Shown here: positions 27,535 through 63,932 of the stretch, one piece after another
Layout of the letters: each line of letters starts with the position of its first letter
How positions within the stretch are numbered: position 1 is the stretch's first letter
DNA from: Macrostomum hystrix
Lineage: Eukaryota; Animalia; Platyhelminthes
NCBI GenBank assembly: GCA_950097015.1
Contig: CATNEN010000002.1
Coordinates: 8,990,001-9,054,000, forward strand
Direction of reading: 5' to 3'
DNA: 64,000 nt
Made by a program: the position numbers and the translations under genes
Notes under the pieces: generated by a model
Told to the model about the DNA's origin: nothing
What the model saw: only the letters and a program-made list of their open reading frames with translations
The model's database searches: none

Positions 27535-30500
27535 GTAGAATCGCAGCAATAGCATTAGCTAGAATCGCAGCAAGAACATTAGCTAGAATCGCAGCAAGAG
27601 CATTAGCTAGAACAACAGCAAGAGCATTAGCTAGAATCGCAGCAAGAGCATTAGCTAGAATCGCAGCAAGAGCATTGGCTAGAATCGCAGCAAGAGCATT
27701 AGCTAGAATCGCAGCAAGACCATTAGCTAGAATCGCAGCAAGACCATTAGCTAGAATCGCAGCAAGAGCATTAGCTAGAATCGCAGCAAGACCATTAGCT
27801 AGAATCACAGCAAAAGCATTAGCTAGAATCGCAGCAAGAGCATTAGCTAGAACCGCAGCAAGAGCATTAGCTAGAATCGCAGCAAGAGCATTAGCTAGAA
27901 TCGGAGCAAGAGCATTAGCTAGAATCGCAGCAAGAGCATTAGCTAGAATCGCAGCAAGAGCATTAGCTAGAATCGCAGCAAGAGCATTAGCTAGAATCGG
28001 AGCAAGAGTATTGGCTAGAATCGGAGCAAGAGTATTAGCTAGAATCGCAGCAAGAGCATTAGCTAGAATCGCAGCAAGAGCATTAGCTAGAATCGCAGCA
28101 AGAGCATTAGCTAGAATCGCAGCAAGAGCATTACCTAGAACCGCAGCAAGAGCATTAGCTAGAATCGCAGCAAAAGCATTAGCTAGAATCGCAGCAAGAC
28201 CATTAGCTAGAATCGCAGCAAGACCATTAGCTAGAATCGCAGCAAGAGCATTAGCTAGAATCGCAGCAAGACCATTAGCTATAATCGCAGCAAGAGCATT
28301 AGCTAGAATCGCAGCAAGAGCATTAGCTAGAATCGCAGCAAGAGCATTGGCTAGAATCGCAGCAAGTGCATTAGCTAGAATCGCAGCAAGAGCATTAGCT
28401 AGAATCGCAGCAAGAGCATTAGCTAGAATCGCAGCAAAAGCATTAGCTAGAATAGCAGCAAGAGCATTAGCTAGAATCGCAGCAAGAGCATTGGCTAGAA
28501 TCGCAGCAAGAGCATTAGCTAGAATCGCAGCAAGAGCATTACCTAGAACCGCAGCAAGAGCATTAGCTAGAATCGCAGCAAAAGCATTAGCTAGAATCGC
28601 AGCAAGAGCATTAGCTAGAACCGCAGCAAGAGCATTAGCTAGAATCGCAGCAAGAGCATTAGCTAGAATCGGAGCAAGAGCATTAGCTAGAATCGCAGCA
28701 AGAGCATTAGCTAGAATCGCAGCAAGAGCATTAGCTAGAATCGCAGCAAGAGCATTAGCTAGAATCGCAGCAAGAGCATTGGCTAGAATCGCAGCAAGTG
28801 CATTAGCTAGAATCGCAGCAAGAGCATTAGCTAGAATCGTAGCAAAGCATTAGCTAGAATCGGAGCAAGAGTATTAGCTAGAATCGCAGCAAGAGCATTA
28901 GCTAGAATCGGAGCAAGAGTATTAGCTAGAATCGCAGCAAGAGCATTAGCTAGAATCGGAGCAAGAGTATTAGCTAGAATCGCAGCAAGAGCATTAGCTA
29001 GAATCGGAGCAAGAGCATTAGCTAGAATCGCAGCAAGAGCATTAGCTAGAATCGCAGCAAGAGCATTAGCTAGAATCGCAGCAAGAGCATTAGCTAGAAT
29101 CGCAGCAAGAGCATTGGCTAGAATCGCAGCAAGAGCATTAGCTAGAATCGGGGCAACAGCATTGGCTAGAATCGCAGCAAGAGCATTAGCTAGAATCGCA
29201 GCAAGAGCATTAGCTAGAATCGCAGCAAGACCATTAGCTAGAATCACAGCAAAAGCATTAGCTAGAACCGCAGCAAGAGCATTAGCTAGAATCGCAGCAA
29301 GAGCATTAGCTAGAATCGCAGCAAAAGCATTAGCTAGAATAGCAGCAAGAGCATTAGCTAGAATCGGAGCAACAGCATTGGCTAGAATCGGAGCAAGAGC
29401 ATTAGCTAGAATCGCAGCAAGAGCATTAGCTAGAATCGGAGCAAGAGTATTAGCTAGAATCGCAGCAAGAGCATTAGCTAGAATCGGAGCAAGAGCATTA
29501 GCTAGAATCGGAGCAAGAGTATTGGCTAGAATCGCAGCAAGAGCATTAGCTAGAATCGCAGCAAGAGCATTAGCTAGAATCGCAGCAAGACCATTAGCTA
29601 GAATCACAGCAAAAGCATTAGCTAGAACCGCAGCAAGAGCATTAGCTAGAATCGCAGCAAGAGCATTAGCTAGAATCGCAGCAAAAGCATTAGCTAGAAT
29701 AACAGCAAGAGCATTAGCTAGAATCGGAGCAACAGCATTGGCTAGAATCGGAGCAAGAGCATTAGCTAGAATCGCAGCAAGAGCATTATCTAGAATCGCA
29801 GAAAAAGCATTAGCTAGAATCGCAGCAAGAGCATTAGCTAGAATCGCAGCAAGAGCATTAGCTAGAATCTCAGCAAGAGCATTAGCTAGAATCGGAGCAA
29901 CAGCATTGGCTAGAATCGGAGCAACAGCATTGGCTAGAATCGAAGCAAGAGCATTAGCTAGAATCGGAGCAAGAGCAGTAACTAGAATCGAAGCAAGAGC
30001 ATTAGCTAGAATCGCAGCAAGAGCATTGGCTAGAATCGCAGAAAAAGCATTAGCTAGAATCGCAGAAAGAGCATTAGCTAGAATCGCAGCAAGAGCATTA
30101 GCTAGAATCGCAGCAAGAGCATTAGCTAGAATCGCAGCAAGAGCATTAGCTAGAATCTCAGCAAGAGCATTAGCTAGAATCGGAGCAACAGCATTGGCTA
30201 GAATCGGAGCAACAGCATTGGCTAGAATCGAAGCAAGAGCATTAGCTAGAATCGGAGCAAGAGCAGTAACTAGAATCGAAGCAAGAGCATTAGCTAGAAT
30301 CGCAGCAAGAGCATTGGCTAGAATCGCAGAAAAAGCATTAGCTAGAATCGCAGAAAGAGCATTAGCTAGAATCGTAGCAAAGCATTAGCTAGAATCGGGG
30401 CAACAGCATTGGCTAGAATCGCAGCAAGAGCATTAGCTAGAATCGCAGCAAGAGCATTAGCTAGAATCGCAGCAAGACCATTAGCTAGAATCACAGCAAA

Positions 30501-33500
30501 AGCATTAGCTAGAACCGCAGCAAGAGCATTAGCTAGAATCGCAGCAAGAGCATTAGCTAGAATCGCAGCAAAAGCATTAGCTAGAATCGCAGCAAGAGCA
30601 TTAGCTAGAATCGCAGCAAAAGCATTAGCTAGAATAACAGCAAGAGCATTAGCTAGAATCGGAGCAACAGCATTGGCTAGAATCGAAGCAAGAGCATTAG
30701 CTAGAATCGCAGCAAGAGCATTAGCTAGAATCGCAGCAAGAGCATTAGCTAGAATCGCAGCAAGAGCATTAGCTAGAATCGGAGCAACAGCATTGGCTAG
30801 AATCGGAGCAAGAGCATTAGCTAGAATCGAAGCAAGAGCATTAGCTAGAATCGCAGCAAGGGCATTAGCTAGAATCGCAGCAAGAGCATTAGCTAGAATC
30901 GCAGCAAAAGCATTAGCTAGAATCGGAGCAAGAGCATTAGCTAGAATCGCAGCAAGAGCATTAGCTAGAATCGCAGCAAGAGCATTAGCTAGAATCGCAG
31001 AAAAAGCATTAGCTAGAATCGCAGCAAGAGCATTACCTAGAATAGGGGCAACAGCATTGGCTAGAATCGCAGCAAGAGAATCAGCTAGAATCGGAGCAAG
31101 AGCATTAGCTAGAATCGCAGCAAGAGAATTAGCTAGAATCTCAGCAAGAGCATTAGCTAGAATCGGAGCAACAGCATTGGCTAGAATCGGAGCAACAGCA
31201 TTGGCTAGAATCGAAGCAAGAGCATTAGCTAGAATCGGAGCAAGAGCAGTAACTAGAATCGAAGCAAGAGCATTAGCTAGAATCGCAGCAAGAGCATTGG
31301 CTAGAATCGCAGAAAAAGCATTAGCTAGAATCGCAGAAAGAGCATTAGCTAGAATCGCAGCAAGAGCATTAGCTAGAATCGCAGCAAGAGCATTAGCTAG
31401 AATCGCAGCAAGAGCATTAGCTAGAATCTCAGCAAGAGCATTAGCTAGAATCGGAGCAACAGCATTGGCTAGAATCGGAGCAACAGCATTGGCTAGAATC
31501 GAAGCAAGAGCATTAGCTAGAATCGGAGCAAGAGCAGTAACTAGAATCGAAGCAAGAGCATTAGCTAGAATCGCAGCAAGAGCATTGGCTAGAATCGCAG
31601 AAAAAGCATTAGCTAGAATCGCAGAAAGAGCATTAGCTAGAATCGTAGCAAAGCATTAGCTAGAATCGGGGCAACAGCATTGGCTAGAATCGCAGCAAGA
31701 GCATTAGCTAGAATCGCAGCAAGAGCATTAGCTAGAATCGCAGCAAGACCATTAGCTAGAATCACAGCAAAAGCATTAGCTAGAACCGCAGCAAGAGCAT
31801 TAGCTAGAATCGCAGCAAGAGCATTAGCTAGAATCGCAGCAAAAGCATTAGCTAGAATAACAGCAAGAGCATTAGCTAGAATCGGAGCAACAGCATTGGC
31901 TAGAATCGAAGCAAGAGCATTAGCTAGAATCGCAGCAAGAGCATTAGCTAGAATCGCAGCAAGAGCATTAGCTAGAATCGCAGCAAGAGCATTAGCTAGA
32001 ATCGGAGCAACAGCATTGGCTAGAATCGGAGCAAGAGCATTAGCTAGAATCGAAGCAAGAGCATTAGCTAGAATCGCAGCAAGGGCATTAGCTAGAATCG
32101 CAGCAAGAGCATTAGCTAGAATCGCAGCAAAAGCATTAGCTAGAATCGGAGCAAGAGCATTAGCTAGAATCGCAGCAAGAGCATTAGCTAGAATCGCAGC
32201 AAGAGCATTAGCTAGAATCGCAGAAAAAGCATTAGCTAGAATCGCAGCAAGAGCATTACCTAGAATAGGGGCAACAGCATTGGCTAGAATCGCAGCAAGA
32301 GAATCAGCTAGAATCGGAGCAAGAGCATTAGCTAGAATCGCAGCAAGAGAATTAGCTAGAATCTCAGCAAGAGCATTAGCTAGAATCGGAGCAACAGCAT
32401 TGGCTAGAATCGGAGCAACAGCATTGGCTAGAATCGAAGCAAGAGCATTAGCTAGAATCGGAGCAAGAGCAGTAACTAGAATCGAAGCAAGAGCATTAGC
32501 TAGAATCGCAGCAAGAGCATTGGCTAGAATCGCAGAAAAAGCATTAGCTAGAATCGCAGAAAGAGCATTAGCTAGAATCGCAGCAAGAGCATTAGCTAGA
32601 ATCGCAGCAAGAGCATTAGCTAGAATCGCAGCAAGAGCATTAGCTAGAATCTCAGCAAGAGCATTAGCTAGAATCGGAGCAACAGCATTGGCTAGAATCG
32701 GAGCAACAGCATTGGCTAGAATCGAAGCAAGAGCATTAGCTAGAATCGGAGCAAGAGCAGTAACTAGAATCGAAGCAAGAGCATTAGCTAGAATCGCAGC
32801 AAGAGCATTGGCTAGAATCGCAGAAAAAGCATTAGCTAGAATCGCAGAAAGAGCATTAGCTAGAATCGTAGCAAAGCATTAGCTAGAATCGGGGCAACAG
32901 CATTGGCTAGAATCGCAGCAAGAGCATTAGCTAGAATCGCAGCAAGAGCATTAGCTAGAATCGCAGCAAGACCATTAGCTAGAATCACAGCAAAAGCATT
33001 AGCTAGAACCGCAGCAAGAGCATTAGCTAGAATCGCAGCAAGAGCATTAGCTAGAATCGCAGCAAAAGCATTAGCTAGAATAACAGCAAGAGCATTAGCT
33101 AGAATCGGAGCAACAGCATTGGCTAGAATCGAAGCAAGAGCATTAGCTAGAATCGCAGCAAGAGCATTAGCTAGAATCGCAGCAAGAGCATTAGCTAGAA
33201 TCGCAGCAAGAGCATTAGCTAGAATCGGAGCAACAGCATTGGCTAGAATCGGAGCAAGAGCATTAGCTAGAATCGGAGCAACAGCATTGGCTAGAATCGG
33301 AGCAAGAGCATTAGCTAGAATCGAAGCAAGAGCATTAGCTAGAATCGCAGCAAGGGCATTAGCTAGAATCGCAGCAAGAGCATTAGCTAGAATCGCAGCA
33401 AGTGCATTAGCTAGAATCGCAGCAAGAGCATTAGCTAGAATCGCAGCAAGTGCATTAGCTAGAATCGCAGCAAGAGCATTAGCTAGAATCGCAGCAAGAG

Positions 33501-33750
33501 CATTAGCTAGAATCGCAGCAAGAGCATTAGCTAGAATCGAAGCAAGAGCATTAGCTAGAATCGCAGCAAGGGCATTAGCTAGAATCGCAGCAAGAGCATT
33601 AGCTAGAATCGCAGCAAGAGCATTAGCTAGAATCGCAGCAAGTGCATTAGCTAGAATCGCAGCAAGAGCATTAGCTAGAATCGCAGCAAGAGCATTAGCT
33701 AGAATCGCAGCAAGAGCATTAGCTAGAATCGCAGCAAAGCTTTAGCTAGG
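27535..33750. repeat. 6.2-kb 24-bp satellite (GCATTAGCTAGAATCGCAGCAAGA) with higher-order repeats
   Basis: About 260 monomers. A 23-bp deletion variant ATCGTAGCAAAGC occurs at 28836, 30371, 31642 and 32865. Confidence 0.97.
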
Positions 33751-36874: not shown

Positions 36875-39800
36875 TCACTCTCCCATCCATCCATCCAGTG
36901 TCTCACTCTCCCATCCATCCAGTGTCTCACTCTCCCATCCATCCAGTGTCTCACTCTCCCATCCATCCAGTGTCTCACTCTCCCATCCATCCAGTGTCTC
37001 ACTCTCCCATCCATCCAGTGTCTCACTCTCCCATCCATCCATCCAGTGTCTCACTCTCCCATCCATCCAGTGTCTCACTCTCCCATCCATCCAGTGTCTC
37101 ACTCTCCCATCCATCCAGTGTCTCACTCTCCCATCCATCCAGTGTCTCACTCTCCCATCCATCCAGTGTCTCACTCTCCCATCCATCCAGTGTCTCACTC
37201 TCCCACCCATCCATCCAGTGTCTCACTCTCCCATCCATCCAGTGTCTCACTCTCCCATCCATCCAGTGTCTCACTCTCCCACCCATCCATCCAGTGTCTC
37301 ACTCTCCCATCCATCCAGTGTCTCACTCTCCCATCCATCCAGTGTCTCACTCTCCCATCCATCCATCCAGTGTCTCACTCTCCCATCCATCCAGTGTCTC
37401 ACTCTCCCACCCATCCATCCAGTGTCTCACTCTCCCATCCATCCAGTGTCTCACTCTCCCATCCATCCAGTGTCTCACTCTCCCATCCATCCAGTGTCTC
37501 ACTCTCCCATCCATCCATCCAGTGTCTCACTCTCCCATCCATCCATCCAGTGTCTCACTCTCCCATCCATCCAGTGTCTCACTCTCCCATCCATCCATCC
37601 AGTGTCTCACTCTCCCATCCATCCATCCAGTGTCTCACTCTCCCATCCATCCATCCAGTGTCTCACTCTCCCATCCATCCATCCAGTGTCTCACTCTCCC
37701 ATCCATCCAGTGTCTCACTCTCCCATCCATCCAGTGTCTCACTCTCCCATCCATCCAGTGTCTCACTCTCCCATCCATCCAGTGTCTCACTCTCCCATCC
37801 ATCCATCCAGTGTCTCACTCTCCCATCCATCCAGTGTCTCACTCTCCCATCCATCCATCCAGTGTCTCACTCTCCCATCCATCCAGTGTCTCACTCTCCC
37901 ATCCATCCAGTGTCTCACTCTCCCATCCATCCATCCAGTGTCTCACTCTCCCATCCATCCATCCAGTGTCTCACTCTCCCATCCATCCATCCAGTGTCTC
38001 ACTCTCCCATCCATCCAGTGTCTCACTCTCCCATCCATCCATCCAGTGTCTCACTCTCCCATCCATCCAGTGTCTCACTCTCCCATCCATCCATCCAGTG
38101 TCTCACTCTCCCATCCATCCAGTGTCTCACTCTCCCATCCATCCAGTGTCTCACTCTCCCATCCATCCAGTGTCTCACTCTCCCATCCATCCAGTGTCTC
38201 ACTCTCCCATCCATCCATCCAGTGTCTCACTCTCCCATCCATCCAGTGTCTCACTCTCCCATCCATCCAGTGTCTCACTCTCCCATCCATCCAGTGTCTC
38301 ACTCTCCCATCCATCCAGTGTCTCACTCTCCCATCCATCCAGTGTCTCACTCTCCCATCCATCCAGTGTCTCACTCTCCCATCCATCCATCCAGTGTCTC
38401 ACTCTCCCATCCATCCAGTGTCTCACTCTCCCATCCATCCAGTGTCTCACTCACCCATCCATCCAGTGTCTCACTCTCCCATCCATCCAGTGTCTCACTC
38501 TCCCATCCATCCAGTGTCTCACTCTCCCATCCATCCATCCAGTGTCTCACTCTCCCATCCATCCAGTGTCTCACTCTCCCATCCATCCAGTGTCTCACTC
38601 TCCCATCCATCCAGTGTCTCACTCTCCCATCCATCCAGTGTCTCACTCTCCCATCCATCCAGTGTCTCACTCTCCCATCCATCCATCCAGTGTCTCACTC
38701 TCCCATCCATCCAGTGTCTCACTCTCCCATCCATCCATCCAGTGTCTCACTCTCCCATCCATCCAGTGTCTCACTCTCCCATCCATCCAGTGTCTCACTC
38801 TCCCATCCATCCATCCAGTGTCTCACTCTCCCATCCATCCATCCAGTGTCTCACTCTCCCATCCATCCATCCAGTGTCTCACTCTCCCATCCATCCAGTG
38901 TCTCACTCTCCCATCCATCCATCCAGTGTCTCACTCTCCCATCCATCCAGTGTCTCACTCTCCCATCCATCCATCCAGTGTCTCACTCTCCCATCCATCC
39001 AGTGTCTCACTCTCCCATCCATCCAGTGTCTCACTCTCCCATCCATCCATCCAGTGTCTCACTCTCCCATCCATCCATCCAGTGTCTCACTCTCCCATCC
39101 ATCCATCCAGTGTCTCACTCTCCCATCCATCCAGTGTCTCACTCTCCCATCCATCCATCCAGTGTCTCACTCTCCCATCCATCCATCCAGTGTCTCACTC
39201 TCCCATCCATCCAGTGTCTCACTCTCCCATCCATCCAGTGTCTCACTCTCCCATCCATCCAGTGTCTCACTCTCCCATCCATCCAGTGTCTCACTCTCCC
39301 ATCCATCCAGTGTCTCACTCTCCCATCCATCCAGTGTCTCACTCTCCCATCCATCCAGTGTCTCACTCTCCCATCCATCCAGTGTCTCACTCTCCCATCC
39401 ATCCAGTGTCTCACTCTCCCATCCATCCAGTGTCTCACTCTCCCATCCATCCAGTGTCTCACTCTCCCATCCATCCAGTGTCTCACTCTCCCATCCATCC
39501 AGTGTCTCACTCTCCCATCCATCCAGTGTCTCACTCTCCCATCTATTTAGTGTCTCACTCTCCCATCCATCCAGTGTCTCACTCTCCCATCTATTTAGTG
39601 TCTCACTCTCCCATCCATCCAGTGTCTCACTCTCCCATCCATCCAGTGTCTCACTCTCCCATCCATCCAGTGTCTCACTCTCCCATCCATCCAGTGTCTC
39701 ACTCCCATCCATCCAGTGTCTCACTCTCCCATCCATCCATCCAGTGTCTCACTCTCCCATCCATCCAGTGTCTCACTCTCCCATCCATCCATCCAGTGTC

Positions 39801-42800
39801 TCACTCTCCCATCCATCCAGTGTCTCACTCTCCCATCCATCCATCCAGTGTCTCACTCTCCCATCCATCCAGTGTCTCACTCTCCCATCCATCCAGTGTC
39901 TCACTCTCCCATCCATCCATCCAGTGTCTCACTCTCCCATCCATCCATCCAGTGTCTCACTCTCCCATCCATCCATCCAGTGTCTCACTCTCCCATCCAT
40001 CCAGTGTCTCACTCTCCCATCCATCCATCCAGTGTCTCACTCTCCCATCCATCCAGTGTCTCACTCTCCCATCCATCCATCCAGTGTCTCACTCTCCCAT
40101 CCATCCAGTGTCTCACTCTCCCATCCATCCAGTGTCTCACTCTCCCATCCATCCAGTGTCTCACTCTCCCATCCATCCAGTGTCTCACTCTCCCATCCAT
40201 CCAGTGTCTCACTCTCCCATCCATCCAGTGTCTCACTCTCCCATCTATTTAGTGTCTCACTCTCCCATCCATCCAGTGTCTCACTCTCCCATCTATTTAG
40301 TGTCTCACTCTCCCATCCATCCAGTGTCTCACTCTCCCATCTATTTAGTGTCTCACTCTCCCATCCATCCAGTGTCTCACTCTCCCATCCATCCAGTGTC
40401 TCACTCTCCCATCCATCCAGTGTCTCACTCTCCCATCCATCCAGTGTCTCACTCTCCCATCCATCCAGTGTCTCACTCTCCCATCCATCCAGTGTCTCAC
40501 TCTCCCATCCATCCAGTGTCTCACTCTCCCATCCATCCAGTGTCTCACTCTCCCATCCATCCAGTGTCTCACTCTCCCATCCATCCAGTGTCTCACTCTC
40601 CCATCCATCCAGTGTCTCACTCTCCCATCCATCCAGTGTCTCACTCTCCCATCCATCCAGTGTCTCACTCTCCCATCCATCCAGTGTCTCACTCTCCCAT
40701 CCATCCAGTGTCTCACTCTCCCATCCATCCAGTGTCTCACTCTCCCATCTATTTAGTGTCTCACTCTCCCATCCATCCAGTGTCTCACTCTCCCATCTAT
40801 TTAGTGTCTCACTCTCCCATCCATCCAGTGTCTCACTCTCCCATCTATTTAGTGTCTCACTCTCCCATCTATCCAGTGTCTCACTCTCCCATCCATCCAG
40901 TGTCTCACTCTCCCATCCATCCAGTGTCTCACTCTCCCATCCATCCAGTGTCTCACTCCCATCCATCCAGTGTCTCACTCTCCCATCCATCCATCCAGTG
41001 TCTCACTCTCCCATCCATCCAGTGTCTCACTCTCCCATCCATCCATCCAGTGTCTCACTCTCCCATCCATCCAGTGTCTCACTCTCCCATCCATCCATCC
41101 AGTGTCTCACTCTCCCATCCATCCAGTGTCTCACTCTCCCATCCATCCAGTGTCTCACTCTCCCATCCATCCATCCAGTGTCTCACTCTCCCATCCATCC
41201 ATCCAGTGTCTCACTCTCCCATCCATCCATCCAGTGTCTCACTCTCCCATCCATCCAGTGTCTCACTCTCCCATCCATCCATCCAGTGTCTCACTCTCCC
41301 ATCCATCCAGTGTCTCACTCTCCCATCCATCCATCCAGTGTCTCACTCTCCCATCCATCCAGTGTCTCACTCTCCCATCCATCCAGTGTCTCACTCTCCC
41401 ATCCATCCAGTGTCTCACTCTCCCATCCATCCAGTGTCTCACTCTCCCATCCATCCAGTGTCTCACTCTCCCATCCATCCAGTGTCTCACTCTCCCATCT
41501 ATTTAGTGTCTCACTCTCCCATCCATCCAGTGTCTCACTCTCCCATCTATTTAGTGTCTCACTCTCCCATCCATCCAGTGTCTCACTCTCCCATCCATCC
41601 AGTGTCTCACTCTCCCATCCATCCAGTGTCTCACTCTCCCATCCATCCAGTGTCTCACTCTCCCATCCATCCAGTGTCTCACTCTCCCATCCATCCAGTG
41701 TCTCACTCTCCCATCCATCCAGTGTCTCACTCTCCCATCCATCCAGTGTCTCACTCTCCCATCCATCCAGTGTCTCACTCTCCCATCCATCCAGTGTCTC
41801 ACTCTCCCATCTATTTAGTGTCTCACTCTCCCATCCATCCAGTGTCTCACTCTCCCATCCATCCAGTGTCTCACTCTCCCATCCATCCAGTGTCTCACTC
41901 TCCCATCCATCCATCCAGTGTCTCACTCTCCCATCCATCCATCCAGTGTCTCACTCTCCCATCCATCCATCCAGTGTCTCACTCTCCCATCCATCCAGTG
42001 TCTCACTCTCCCATCCATCCATCCAGTGTCTCACTCTCCCATCCATCCAGTGTCTCACTCTCCCATCCATCCATCCAGTGTCTCACTCTCCCATCCATCC
42101 AGTGTCTCACTCTCCCATCCATCCAGTGTCTCACTCTCCCATCCATCCAGTGTCTCACTCTCCCATCCATCCATCCAGTGTCTCACTCTCCCATCCATCC
42201 AGTGTCTCACTCTCCCATCCATCCATCCAGTGTCTCACTCTCCCATCCATCCAGTGTCTCACTCTCCCATCCATCCAGTGTCTCACTCTCCCATCCATCC
42301 ATCCAGTGTCTCACTCTCCCATCCATCCATCCAGTGTCTCACTCTCCCATCCATCCATCCAGTGTCTCACTCTCCCATCCATCCAGTGTCTCACTCTCCC
42401 ATCCATCCATCCAGTGTCTCACTCTCCCATCCATCCAGTGTCTCACTCTCCCATCCATCCATCCAGTGTCTCACTCTCCCATCCATCCAGTGTCTCACTC
42501 TCCCATCCATCCAGTGTCTCACTCTCCCATCCATCCAGTGTCTCACTCTCCCATCCATCCATCCAGTGTCTCACTCTCCCATCCATCCATCCAGTGTCTC
42601 ACTCTCCCATCCATCCATCCAGTGTCTCACTCTCCCATCCATCCAGTGTCTCACTCTCCCATCCATCCATCCAGTGTCTCACTCTCCCATCCATCCAGTG
42701 TCTCACTCTCCCATCCATCCAGTGTCTCACTCTCCCATCCATCCAGTGTCTCACTCTCCCATCCATCCAGTGTCTCACTCTCCCATCCATCCAGTGTCTC

Positions 42801-43085
42801 ACTCTCCCATCCATCCAGTGTCTCACTCTCCCATCCATCCAGTGTCTCACTCTCCCATCCATCCAGTGTCTCACTCTCCCATCCATCCAGTGTCTCACTC
42901 TCCCATCCATCCAGTGTCTCACTCTCCCATCCATCCAGTGTCTCACTCTCCCATCCATCCAGTGTCTCACTCTCCCATCCATCCAGTGTCTCACTCCCAT
43001 CCATCCAGTGTCTCACTCTCCCATCCATCCAGTGTCTCACTCCCATCTATTTAGTGTCTCACTCTCATCTATTTAGTGTCTCACA
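36875..43085. repeat. 6.2-kb 24/28-bp satellite (AGTGTCTCACTCTCCCATCCATCC[ATCC])
   Basis: About 245 monomers; variants with ATCTATTTAG and 22-bp deletions. Source of the 2162-aa and 1952-aa pseudo-ORFs. Confidence 0.97.
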
Positions 43086-58127: not shown

Positions 58128-61100
58128 TTAATACCTCGAAGACCTCAGCAGCTGGAGCAAACCAGCAGCGTCTTCTAGTTCGCCGCTCCACCTGACAGTC
58201 TTGACAAACCGGTGATTTCTGCAGTGCTCCTCCAAGCCTCGTCCGAACTCCTCCAGGATGTCGTCGACCTGCTGCGGGCTGATCAGTCCGGCGAAGCCCC
58301 AGTTCAGCTGCTCGCGCAGGTAAGAAAACTGGCCGGGAATTTCGAAGGCCAGTCTTGAATGCTGCCAGTGCCAGACTTGATAATTGTAGGGCCTGCCATT
58401 GGATCCCATGAAGCTTTCGTTATTTTTTTGGGCTTCGAGGTCGGCCAGGCCCTGCTCCAGAGCGCTCTGCTCAGGGAAGCGATTGCTTGCAGGCAGGACC
58501 ATGAAGTACGGCTTGTCGAACGGCAAAGCTGCCAGCTGACTTTCGTCAGCAGAGTCGTCCCGCATGTCTGCAAAAGTAAGAGTTCGTTTCGTTTCCTACA
58601 CAACGCACGTTTTTCCGTTGATTTGCATCTCAATCAGCCACATGACTCGTACAGTAGAACTTCTGCGACTAATCGAGGCCCAACCTTAGCGTGAAGTCGT
58701 TTGACTGTCGAATCCATCCTATAAAATTTAATTCATGGAACTCCGCATCATTGCAGTTACTTCGCTTTCAAATCGATCGCAAAAGAAAATTTTTTTTCCT
58801 TCACTTGGGATAATCTTCGATGTGCGATTCGATCAGGTTTCCATTAAACCAGAAAGAAACTTACATTCCTCCATCTTGTCGACAAAGCCGCAGCAAATGT
58901 TCGCGGTCAGGACACGGGCCATTGACATCAGCGGAAAAACATCCTTAACTTCGAGGCAGTGGACCTCTGCAAGACCTGAAATTTAGTCACAGCAAATTTG
59001 AATGGAGAGTGATAAATGACAAGATTCTAAACAATTTGTCTAGAGTAAGAGAGCGCAGGTGTTTATAAATGGTGAACAAAATAACAAATATTTACGACAA
59101 TCAGTTACTTCAACTTACGAAGGCCATCGATGACGTCAGCAAGAGTGCGCAGCTGCTGTCCGAAGGGCAGCCTGCCTTCAACGTTGTCGCCAGTCAGAGT
59201 TCGCACGCCTGCCACGCAGCAGTAGGGCAGGCATCTCAGCCGATCCGGCAGGACGTCGTGGACAGCTTCAATGCCAACTCCGAAGTCTCCCACAATGATG
59301 ACGGAAACGCAGCACTCGCCAGTCATGCTCATCTGAAATGAAAGCACAAGATATTGATGCATTTTTATCTGGCATTGAGAAGTTGACAGGTGCATACAGA
59401 ACCCAGAAGATACTCAACCAGTGGCACAGCCGCATCTTTTGTGGTGCATTCAAATGCAGCGTACGGCTCTATGGACAGGAGGCGCTGGCACATCCCCTAA
59501 GCTCTATCTACACCAGCTAGTTCTCGTTCCCATTTCACAGCTGCAGGGCGAAATATCTTGTTTCGAACTCCTGAATTTTCGGTTAGAAGTTCGGCGATCT
59601 AGACTGAAGTCTCTCAACGTGAATTTGCGTAGCCGAGCCAGAATGGGGTGTGGGCGCTGGTCATCTGATTGGCTGGTGCGGGTGTCCACCCAGTGCTTGC
59701 ACCGCTTTGCCAAACCCTTACAGTTAGCATTGAACAGACTCACCTTTTCAGCAGCAGCGGTGACTTTATTATTCTCGGTGCCTCTCAAGTCCTCCGGACT
59801 CAGCACAAGAAGAATTCTCCGGAAGTGTTGCAAATGCTCAAATTGCAAATCGTTAACTGCCGAAAGTTCGTACCTGCCAGGTAGTCTGGAATCCAGTGCC
59901 ATCTTAAGTGCGTCCGTCTGATTGCTAAGGGAGCTGCTCATTGCTACGAGCACATGCGGATCTGCGCATTCCATAGAAAACTTTGACCCAAACGCCATTC
60001 CACCTAAACTCGCATTCTTCGCCTGGGGTTGGGCAACAAAGCTCCTGCTTTCATTGTTCATGCACATTTTCAGACTCTCTTTGCTGGCCACCTCAACCAG
60101 CGCCACCTTTGAGCTCTGCTCAGTGCTGATGTGGCTCTCTGGATTGCTGAAAAGCAGCCTTGGAAAGTAAGGATGGTAGATGATGATTTTCAGCGCCTCC
60201 TTGAACTGACTGAACATTTCCTCTCGAACTTCAGCAATGTCCAGTGCTTGCGATGCCTCAACGCTCATGTCTCGCATGGCGAAGATCGGGGAGGCCCAGT
60301 CGGCGAAGATGACAGCGTGCGTCTCTCCTGAAGGTGTTCTTTGATCCAGCTCCATCAAGTAGATGAACACTTTTCTTTGATAGCCAAGGCCATCGAAATA
60401 CAAAATCCCAGTTTTCACGCAACCAGGGAACAGGACGTCCGGACTGACGTCTTGACCCAGTTTGTCCGGAACAAGAACGAAATACTTTTTGAGCACCAGA
60501 ATCTTTTCAGGTAGCAGTTGAATTCCCACGCTACTCAGCTTGCTCTCACTGAGATGATCGCCAACATAGAGAGCTTCTGTGATCCGAGTCTCCAGGTTGG
60601 GCACAATGAGACGCAGGAAGGTTGTGGCGAAGTTCCAGGCGAAAGCTTCTCCGGTGCTCGCATTGCTCTTTTGCACTGCAATGATTTTTTACTTGATTTG
60701 AAGTTTCTTGGTCGATAACCACCCATTTTTCAGCTAGGTTGAGGTTGTGTAAATACTAGCTGCTAGTATTTATGTACGTAATTACGCTCGTAACAGTGAC
60801 TCTCACCTTGAGGTTGCATGAGACCAAGGATCACTGTTCTTGCCAAGTGTCCGAGCTGGCTGAGATCATCCTCTCCCGTCAGCTTGACCACAGACTGAAA
60901 CTGGTCTCGAATTCTCGGGTGCTGCAGAAGGTCTTGCGTGGTCAATTCCCCTGAATCAGCTCGGGAAGTCCAGTTGTCCACAAGATGCAGCGGTACGTGT
61001 TTATTGGCCATGCGCTGAAATATATGGCAACGATTTTCATGTGGAGAAAGCACAGCGTATTAAGAATGTGCCAGAAAAGCTGTCGAATTTAGCTTTGAAA

Positions 61101-61755
61101 GTCAACAGGAAAGCAGTTAAAATCATTTAAAGCTTGTTAAGACTTAAAGCCCGTCCTCTGCTGTTGTAGATGGTATACTCGCATTAAAAAATTTTGCAGT
61201 TATAAGTGAAGTTACCTGCTTCATCGTCAGCAGCAGGAGTGGCCGAATGTACACCATTGGTTTCTTGTTGAACATAAGCACAATGGCATCAGAGCTGTAC
61301 ACCAGCTGCACGATGCTTGTCCAGTCCTCCAGGTTGTCATATATTCTGACCACAACTCTGGCCTCACCCTGTGCGTCCCTTTCGGTGAGAAATCCTTTCA
61401 GGGCTGTCGTCATGTCCTCCTGTAGAGCTCTGCTGGCGTCGTTAGCTTTTCCGACCACAAGCAAAGCCACCGTGACGTGATGCGTCTCATCTATCATAAA
61501 ATGCGGTTGTGCTTGCATGCATGTGTTATTTTATCCTAGGGTATATGTACACGCTGAAAAGGGTGCACAGGTGAAATCGAAGGTCATGCTGTCACATAAT
61601 TTTTAACGATTTTGAGTTTGAGTAGAACTAGTTTCAGCTTTCATTTTGAGTAAAACCTGTTTAACAAAATTACTAGCTCTCATCTTACCGAGCGAAGCAC
61701 GGAACAAAACCCCGCTGGCTTCTCGCATGAAGTAGTCAGATGTTTCGAGTGCCAT
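58128..61755 (-). CDS. TIR-STING-TIR-STING tandem-domain protein, 7 exons, 748 aa, no transmembrane segment
   Basis: Exons 61755-61689, 61490-61216, 61014-60807, 60675-59744, 59332-59119, 58975-58865 and 58567-58128; all GT-AG, phase-matched, 2247 nt. STING1: AFAWNFATTFLRLIVPNLETRI / YFVLVP / GYQRKVF / ADWASP. STING2: ARVLTANICCGFV / YFMVLP / GRPYNY / AFEIPG / AGLISPQQ...EEFGRGLEE. TIR2: HVLVAMS...RRILLVLSPEDL...VSVII...VLPDRLRCL. TIR1 is more divergent (IVQLVYSSDAIVLMF...HVPLHLV). Confidence 0.82.
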
Positions 61756-63501: not shown

Positions 63502-63932
63502 TTAATACCTCGAAGACCTCAGTAGCTGGAGCAAACCAGCAGCGCCTTCTTGTTCATAGCTCCACCTGACAGTCTTGACAAACCGGTGATTTCTGCAGTG
63601 CTCCACCAAGCCTCGTCCGAACTCCTCCAGGATGTCGTCGACCTGCTGCGGGCTGATCAGTCCGGCGAAGCCCCAGTTCAGCTGCTCGCGCAGGTAAGAA
63701 AACTGGCCGGGAATTTCGAAGGCCAGTCTTGAATGCTGCCAGTGCCAGACTTGATAATTGTAGGGCCTGCCATTGGATCCCATGAAGCTTTCGTTATTTT
63801 TTTGGGCTCCGTGGTCGGCCAGGCCCTGCTCCAGAGCGCTCTGCTCAGGGAAGCGATTGCTTGCAGGCAGGACAATGAAGTACGGCTTGTCGAACGGCAA
63901 AGCACTCCCTTGACTGGACTCGTTCTGCATGT
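63502..63932 (-). CDS. Terminal exon (STING ligand-binding domain, C-terminal part) of a tandem paralog; rest of gene lies beyond the window end
   Basis: Acceptor ttgtag|AC in the same phase as 58567. 63502-63903 is near-identical to 58128-58529, and the 3' flank is also duplicated. Confidence 0.85.

Follow-up and report, generated by a model that had tools for sequence, protein, structure and literature searches.

Two unlike STING-type domains in one predicted chain of the flatworm Macrostomum hystrix, and their possible pairing within the molecule

Introduction

The closest described systems are mollusc proteins with a doubled TIR-STING architecture. Three oyster annotations with two STING and two TIR domains have already been catalogued (PMC11103948), and the scallop Mizuhopecten yessoensis protein XP_021348888 (P0007) carries the order TIR, STING, TIR, STING with clear Pfam matches. 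A single-module form is found in the oyster Crassostrea gigas (PDB 6WT7; PMC10732462) and in bacterial CBASS, where the TIR-STING/Cap12 proteins form filaments (PMC9402430); here a cytosolic STING domain is joined to an alpha/beta domain of the effector type at its N-terminal side, and the protein is not anchored in a membrane. These single-module proteins have one STING domain per chain and assemble as symmetric homodimers. Canonical animal STING, as in human (4KSY, 6S26) and Nematostella (5CFQ), is a membrane-anchored homodimer.

Homodimer symmetry limits the reading of asymmetric ligands (2'3'-cGAMP, 3'2'-cGAMP, cUA). The classical ligand contacts of STING are Y167, R238, Y240, E260 and T263, and to our knowledge every STING that has been solved or characterised is a symmetric homodimer. 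If two unlike STING domains do pair naturally within one chain, they would reveal how an asymmetric pocket can evolve from a dimer that was duplicated and fused, and the protein would offer a monomeric scaffold for ligand-specificity work. Our literature search returned neither a paper that deals with the pairing of two STING domains of one chain nor one on STING in Macrostomum.

The locus described here belongs to M. hystrix (assembly GCA_950097015.1) and lies in a stretch of 64,000 nucleotides (contig CATNEN010000002.1, hereafter contig 2, positions 8,990,001 to 9,054,000), which is referred to below as the window. A first-pass annotation had read two STING domains with complementary, non-identical pocket residues at 58131-60665 of the window and had proposed that they form an intramolecular pseudo-heterodimer. 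This stretch proved to lie inside a spliced double-STING gene on the minus strand. Like the mollusc doubled proteins (the oyster annotations and XP_021348888), the product is soluble, has the same four-domain order in one chain and has no membrane segment, and in both cases the two STING domains of one protein differ at pocket positions. On the other hand, the mollusc STING and TIR domains pass Pfam easily (STING_LBD E 5e-52, TIR_2 E 3e-12), whereas the first flatworm domain (STING1) falls under the cut-off and Pfam detects neither the second (STING2) nor either of the alpha/beta domains; in addition, some flatworm members of the family are without the middle alpha/beta domain. Four profile comparisons of the flatworm halves with the mollusc halves gave no clear pattern and lend no support to common descent. 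The flatworm protein differs from single-module TIR-STING in its two unlike STING domains per chain and in that a TIR/NADase function is putative; it differs from canonical STING in its tandem arrangement, in having no transmembrane segment and no C-terminal TBK1-type tail that we could see, and in an identity of 12-19%. We regard the window gene as a divergent variant of the doubled TIR-STING architecture already catalogued in molluscs, and should its two STING domains turn out not to pair, what is left is one more divergent representative of that mollusc-listed group.

Two further cases of paired STING domains were seen. The octocoral Paramuricea clavata protein CAB4035226.1 (P0004) has two Pfam-clear, near-identical STING domains in one chain, and may be two fused gene models. 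Two metagenome proteins of 645 and 760 residues (P0006 and P0016) have two Pfam-clear STING domains with a long spacer between them.

Structure and expression of the double-STING gene

The double-STING gene is spliced and expressed. It occupies positions 61755-58128 on the minus strand and has seven exons with 2247 coding bases (748 codons). The exons were first derived from open frames and GT-AG sites and were then checked against RNA-derived contigs of public runs. All six introns are GT-AG, all phases fit, and no stop occurs inside the exons. RNA contigs from three runs of one 2020 study lack precisely the introns 58568-58864, 58976-59118, 59333-59743, 60676-60806 and 61015-61215; the sixth intron, 61491-61688, is also skipped, which places the start of the gene at the ATG at 61755. 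Single RNA contigs span exons E, D and C, and three of the same joints recur, at ~96% identity, in a contig whose run carries the label of another organism. The RNA contigs also contain a non-canonical joint, 60861/61218 (GA..CT), with merely 21 letters on one side, which may originate from a chimeric contig between paralogs, and they show low-depth retention of two introns (58559-58770 and 59504-59748).

All exons lie on the minus strand. Exon 0 (61689-61755) holds the start codon at 61755 and comprises 22 codons and one base; its frame and GT donor were checked, and the RNA joint 61689/61490 connects it to exon A. The N-terminal alpha/beta ("TIR1-like") domain is divided between exon A (61216-61490), which carries its first half, has the joints 61490/61689 and 61014/61216, is conserved in six paralogs and has no Pfam TIR match, and exon B (60807-61014), which carries the second half and has the joints 61014/61216 and 60675/60807 with fitting phases. 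Exon C (59744-60675) carries STING1 and the start of the middle alpha/beta ("TIR2-like") domain. Its first ~205 codons (60059-60675) form the STING1 ligand-binding domain; its end (59744-59956) is the N-terminal half of the middle domain, which was recognised by paralog alignment as an insertion relative to the family members without it and has no TIR or SEFIR match. The C-terminal half of the middle domain follows in exon D (59119-59332; joints 59332/59744 and 58975/59119), which is 100% identical in two neighbouring paralogs. Exon E (58865-58975), bounded by RNA joints, encodes helix alpha-1 of STING2 (P-L-M-S-M-A..A-N-I-C-C-G-F), a motif conserved in the paralogs, and exon F (58128-58567) encodes the STING2 core with R-P-Y and F-E-I-P-G-Q and ends in a TAA stop. 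The order in the encoded protein is alpha/beta domain, STING1, alpha/beta domain, STING2; no typical hydrophobic 19-mer that could be a membrane helix was found in the 748-residue product, which is predicted to be soluble. At 63505-63924, also on the minus strand, the window contains the last exon (STING2 core) of the next paralog of the array, 91% identical to exon F; the remainder of this gene lies past the window edge (full locus L018).

Two diverged STING folds

STING1 matches the Pfam domain STING_LBD (PF15009) at E 6e-5 with 22.9 bits, under the 27-bit cut-off. When a profile of 12 STING1 paralogs was run against the PDB, the matches were all STING entries (best E 4e-4) and were due mostly to helix alpha-1; a word-index protein search with exon C gave no matches. 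The phmmer alignment of STING1 to mouse STING reproduces the first-pass register exactly, with a 2-residue insertion after position 240. In this register the motif A-W-N-F-A-T-T-F provides W161, N162, F163 and F167, G-Y-Q-R-K-V-F places K-V-F at 238-240, and F-A-D-W-A-S-P places D-W-A-S-P at 260-264.

STING2 has no Pfam match by sequence, and a profile of 12 STING2 paralogs finds nothing in the PDB. Its sole in-register sequence match is a weak one, to scallop STING (E 0.0019), and an ESM Atlas feature search with exon F gave no usable lead. When STING2 was compared with STING1 by hhalign, the probability was 0.5%, with no significant similarity; consequently, an internal duplication is not demonstrable by sequence, and the case for it is carried entirely by the fold. 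The fold of STING2 was modelled on the contiguous STING2 of the M. lignano protein PAA82216.1 (P0001:400-582), whose identity to exons E and F of the window gene is 34-43%, and the window exons were among the alignment rows. The resulting model (pLDDT 83.6, pTM 0.81) has the STING order of helices and strands, and the top 50 Foldseek matches are STING only (E 2e-6, probability 1.0, TM 0.55-0.65, 12-15% identity). Model residues 9-183 align to human 154-336, so that N falls at position 162 and F at 167; strand beta-3 begins with R-x-Y, and the E is the last residue of strand beta-4, directly ahead of helix alpha-3. For the window gene, this structural register assigns N162, I163, G166 and F167 to A-N-I-C-C-G-F of exon E (58975-58865), and it places R-P-Y at 238-240 (G-R-P-Y) and E-I-P-G-Q at 260-264 (F-E-I-P-G-Q) in exon F (58567-58128).

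The predicted models of STING1 and of STING2 have STING structures as their only structural matches, and in each case the whole-domain STING fold was found. Judged from these models, both ligand-binding domains have the STING fold, well beyond chance, and STING2 is a genuine but extremely diverged STING ligand-binding fold.

The alpha/beta domains

The label "TIR2", which the first-pass annotation had given to the middle domain, found no confirmation in any sequence test (Pfam, PDB profile or hhalign). No TIR or SEFIR match was obtained for the window exons or the corresponding domains of their relatives (Pfam TIR and TIR_2, E up to 10), a profile search of the PDB with the alpha/beta domain returned nothing, and the hhalign probability of the alpha/beta domain against the scallop TIR was 0.1%. 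In a low-confidence ESM Atlas model (pLDDT 0.40) of the M. lignano protein PAA63807.1, residues 375-525 resemble flavodoxin and receiver domains (TM 0.6). This predicted flavodoxin-like look is compatible with TIR and not specific to TIR, and the TIR identity of both alpha/beta domains is unproven.

The double-STING family in M. hystrix and M. lignano

The genome contains at least 12 double-STING loci, and searches with exon C and with exon F return the same places. Seven loci, among them the neighbouring gene at the window edge, are arrayed in tandem on contig 2 at 8.967-9.105 Mb; four loci lie on contig 39, and contigs 7 and 38 have one each. Every intact locus has STING1 followed by STING2, and the two are never apart; a frameshifted STING1 fragment is present within the contig 2 cluster (8967282-8967879). 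Identity between paralogs ranges from 94% down to 28%. The contig 39 type and PAA82216.1 are without the middle alpha/beta domain, so that the last helix of STING1 is followed by ~27 residues and then by helix alpha-1 of STING2; in the other types, including the window gene, this linker is the exact site at which a domain of ~170 residues has been inserted.

Between old paralogs, dN/dS is 0.17-0.29 for STING1 and 0.20-0.39 for STING2, while between recent copies it is 0.4-1.0 or more. Purifying selection (omega ~0.2-0.3 in both domains) has maintained STING1 and STING2 from a time that precedes the divergence of the paralog subfamilies. Divergence within the contig 2 array is a mosaic: against two neighbours, dS is 0.06-0.10 in STING1 and 0.45-0.71 in the linker and middle domain, which points to gene conversion or recombination between array copies. 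In the contig 7 paralog (L020 5149-5771), an 89-bp unit is repeated seven times at 99% identity just downstream of exon A, and each unit carries the last 15 codons of that exon.

Among 1.84 billion representative proteins, the only strong matches are three M. lignano clusters (E 1e-53 to 2e-65), all of which carry both STING domains; a word-index search with PAA63807.1 returned its own cluster only. The M. lignano proteins PAA82216.1 (582 aa), PAA63807.1 (712 aa) and PAA82218.1 (927 aa) belong to the same family, have the same order of STING1 then STING2, and share 29-42% identity with the window protein over the STING domains; the middle domain is missing from one type, while one carries an additional domain at the N-terminus. 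They are unannotated or have automatic names only. Lower-bound searches of the genome with PF15009 and with a scallop STING domain found no ordinary STING elsewhere. The double-STING family extends STING to free-living flatworms, in a form missed by standard domain searches. RNAi and transgenesis exist for M. lignano, so that the function of the family is testable there.

Residues of the predicted binding pocket

The pocket residues listed in the first-pass annotation are all present in STING1 (register by phmmer) and in STING2 (register by structural alignment), and they are indeed non-identical between the domains, which gives two near-complete, unlike half-sites. At positions 167, 238, 240, 260 and 263, STING1 has F, K, F, D and S, and STING2 has F, R, Y, E and G; these residues are conservative replacements of, or identical to, the classical contacts. 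Each domain of the window gene carries an aromatic residue at 167, a basic residue at 238, an aromatic residue at 240 and an acid at 260. The term "complementary" is therefore wrong for the window gene alone, because both half-sites look nearly complete.

The comparison was extended to a residue table of 17 STING1 and 17 STING2 sequences of the family. In STING2, N162 and R238 are invariant, position 240 is always Y or F, and E260 is found in all but one copy. In STING1, the corresponding positions vary: 238 is K, R, T, Q, Y or M, 240 is F, T, P or Q, and 260 is mostly G, with D only in the subfamily of the window gene. STING1 has an invariant set of its own, which consists of A160, W161, K/R237, an aromatic residue at 261, A262 and P264, and F167 is invariant in both domains. 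These alignments show a real, family-wide division, in which STING2 holds the residues of the classical phosphate and base contacts and STING1 holds the classical helix alpha-1 and a helix-cap motif. Such asymmetric conservation across the family fits an asymmetric pocket. In addition, T166/C165 in the window clade, as opposed to G166/F165 in the others, is a possible size-compensating pair at the alpha-1 helices, for which there is a single evolutionary event to go by.

Pairing of the two STING domains

The arrangement of the two domains was modelled with AlphaFold2 for M. lignano PAA82216.1 (P0001:155-582; STING1, linker and STING2, 428 residues), the same relative that served for the fold model, which is 30-40% identical to the window protein. 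The model comes from this one method and from a shallow alignment of 31 rows, 8 of which span both domains; it has a mean pLDDT of 78 and a pTM of 0.80, and residues 229-252, a 24-residue linker, are disordered. The pTM score averages the predicted error across all residue pairs, and by our own estimate two freely hinged, well-folded domains of that size would give a pTM of ~0.47. At 0.80, therefore, the model fixes STING1 and STING2 against each other. A two-chain complex prediction of STING1 with STING2 of PAA82216.1 scored 0.00; alignments were unused and the fold of the partner was uncertain, and this score speaks neither for nor against pairing. When the two-domain model was compared with the ESM Atlas in search of tandems with the same arrangement, only a one-domain match was returned, the best match of STING2 being a bacterial Cap12 cluster (TM 0.38 by row, 151 residues). 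Judged from the general structure of STING, a linker of 27 residues should be long enough to span the dimer. The concern raised with the first-pass proposal, that the middle domain as a linker might block pairing, is not borne out, since that domain is inserted exactly at the flexible linker of the short-linker members.

Based on the results presented above, the intramolecular pairing of STING1 and STING2 is the best-supported reading, and the chance that it is right is about even. The constant co-occurrence of the two domains, purifying selection, the short disordered linker of some paralogs, the pTM of 0.80 on a relative and the asymmetric conservation all support this part of the first-pass proposal; the two domains would presumably meet at the canonical alpha-1/alpha-1 interface. 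In the fullest form of this reading, which in our judgement could equally well be right or wrong, two TIR-STING-type sensor-plus-effector modules have been fused, and their STING domains pair within the chain to make one asymmetric pocket. STING1 and STING2 would pack like the subunits of an ordinary STING dimer and enclose a single nucleotide-binding cleft. STING2 would contribute the classical contacts N162, F167, R238, Y240 and E260, and STING1 would contribute its alpha-1 helix (A160, W161 and F167), a basic residue at 237/238 and the aromatic-A-x-P helix cap, with its positions 238, 240 and 260 free to drift between paralogs. With such unlike contributions, the pocket would be intrinsically asymmetric, and one ligand would be bound per chain. 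By analogy with TIR-STING of bacteria and oysters, ligand binding would then most likely trigger assembly, with both alpha/beta domains providing the output; this output step is conjectural and unsupported, because the alpha/beta domains give no TIR signal. More tentatively, and less likely than not in our view, such a single-chain asymmetric receptor, with one ligand per chain, might distinguish between nucleotide signals that are asymmetric, or be proof against symmetric decoys, as no homodimeric STING could, and the dozen fast-evolving paralogs might form a panel of differing specificity in an animal without ordinary STING.

An alternative that we consider unlikely is that the domains pair between molecules, STING1 with STING1 and STING2 with STING2, to form either a dimer of tandems or an open-ended chain or filament; there would then be two symmetric pockets, each with its own specificity. 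All of the STING structures matched by our models are symmetric homodimer entries, and bacterial TIR-STING works as a filament (PMC9402430). The linkers point in two directions: in the window gene a whole domain separates STING1 from STING2, which favours pairing between molecules, whereas the short linker of 27 residues in other members speaks for pairing inside the chain. Moreover, a STING1 homodimer in most paralogs would have G260 and P, T or Q at 240 on both sides, which implies a poor pocket; the monomer model predicts that the two domains pack together, and intact genes never have one domain apart from the other.

It is also rather improbable, in our view, that only STING2 senses a ligand and STING1 is a degenerate structural partner or decoy without specific ligand contacts, or that the whole family is a non-binding adaptor. 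In favour of this are the variation of STING1 at 238, 240 and 260, where STING2 keeps R, Y/F and E, and an omega of 0.5-1.0 among recent paralogs. However, STING1 keeps A160, W161, F167, K/R237, the aromatic residue at 261, A262 and P264 without exception, and it is under purifying selection between old paralogs (omega ~0.2). In the STING1 of the window subfamily, each of the classical contacts is replaced conservatively (K238, F240, D260 and S263). The last alternative, that the tandem is an artefact in which two neighbouring genes or a decaying pseudogene are read as one, found no direct support beyond the existence of the frameshifted STING1 fragment elsewhere in the cluster, and it was rejected as scarcely credible on the RNA contigs, single ones of which cross exons E, D and C, on the fitting phases and stop-free exons, and on the independent M. 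lignano proteins with the same domain order in one chain.

Candidate nucleotidyltransferases and genomic surroundings

The Mab-21 C-terminal domain exceeds the Pfam cut-off at no fewer than 103 loci genome-wide; most of these are 400-600 codons long and consist of one ORF (e.g., L028 889-2382, minus strand). The Mab-21 nucleotidyltransferase domain has one clear locus, on contig 24 (4852916-4853761), and one sampled ORF with the C-terminal domain is without the G[SG]..[DE]x[DE] motif. That the nucleotidyltransferase domain, as a putative source of ligand, has a single clear locus counts against the ligand-binding reading given above. With the nucleotidyltransferase domain at one locus and the motif absent from the sampled ORF, an expansion of cGAS-like receptors is not claimed.

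The double-STING gene cluster lies ~0.3-0.4 Mb from the end of its 9.41-Mb contig. Elsewhere in the window, positions 25000-55034 form a 30-kb minisatellite field with many arrays of 5-50 bp units, including a 24-bp unit repeated 259 times at 27536-33749 and another 24-bp unit repeated 248 times at 36887-43084. This minisatellite field accounts for long ORFs in several frames and for an extreme GC skew.
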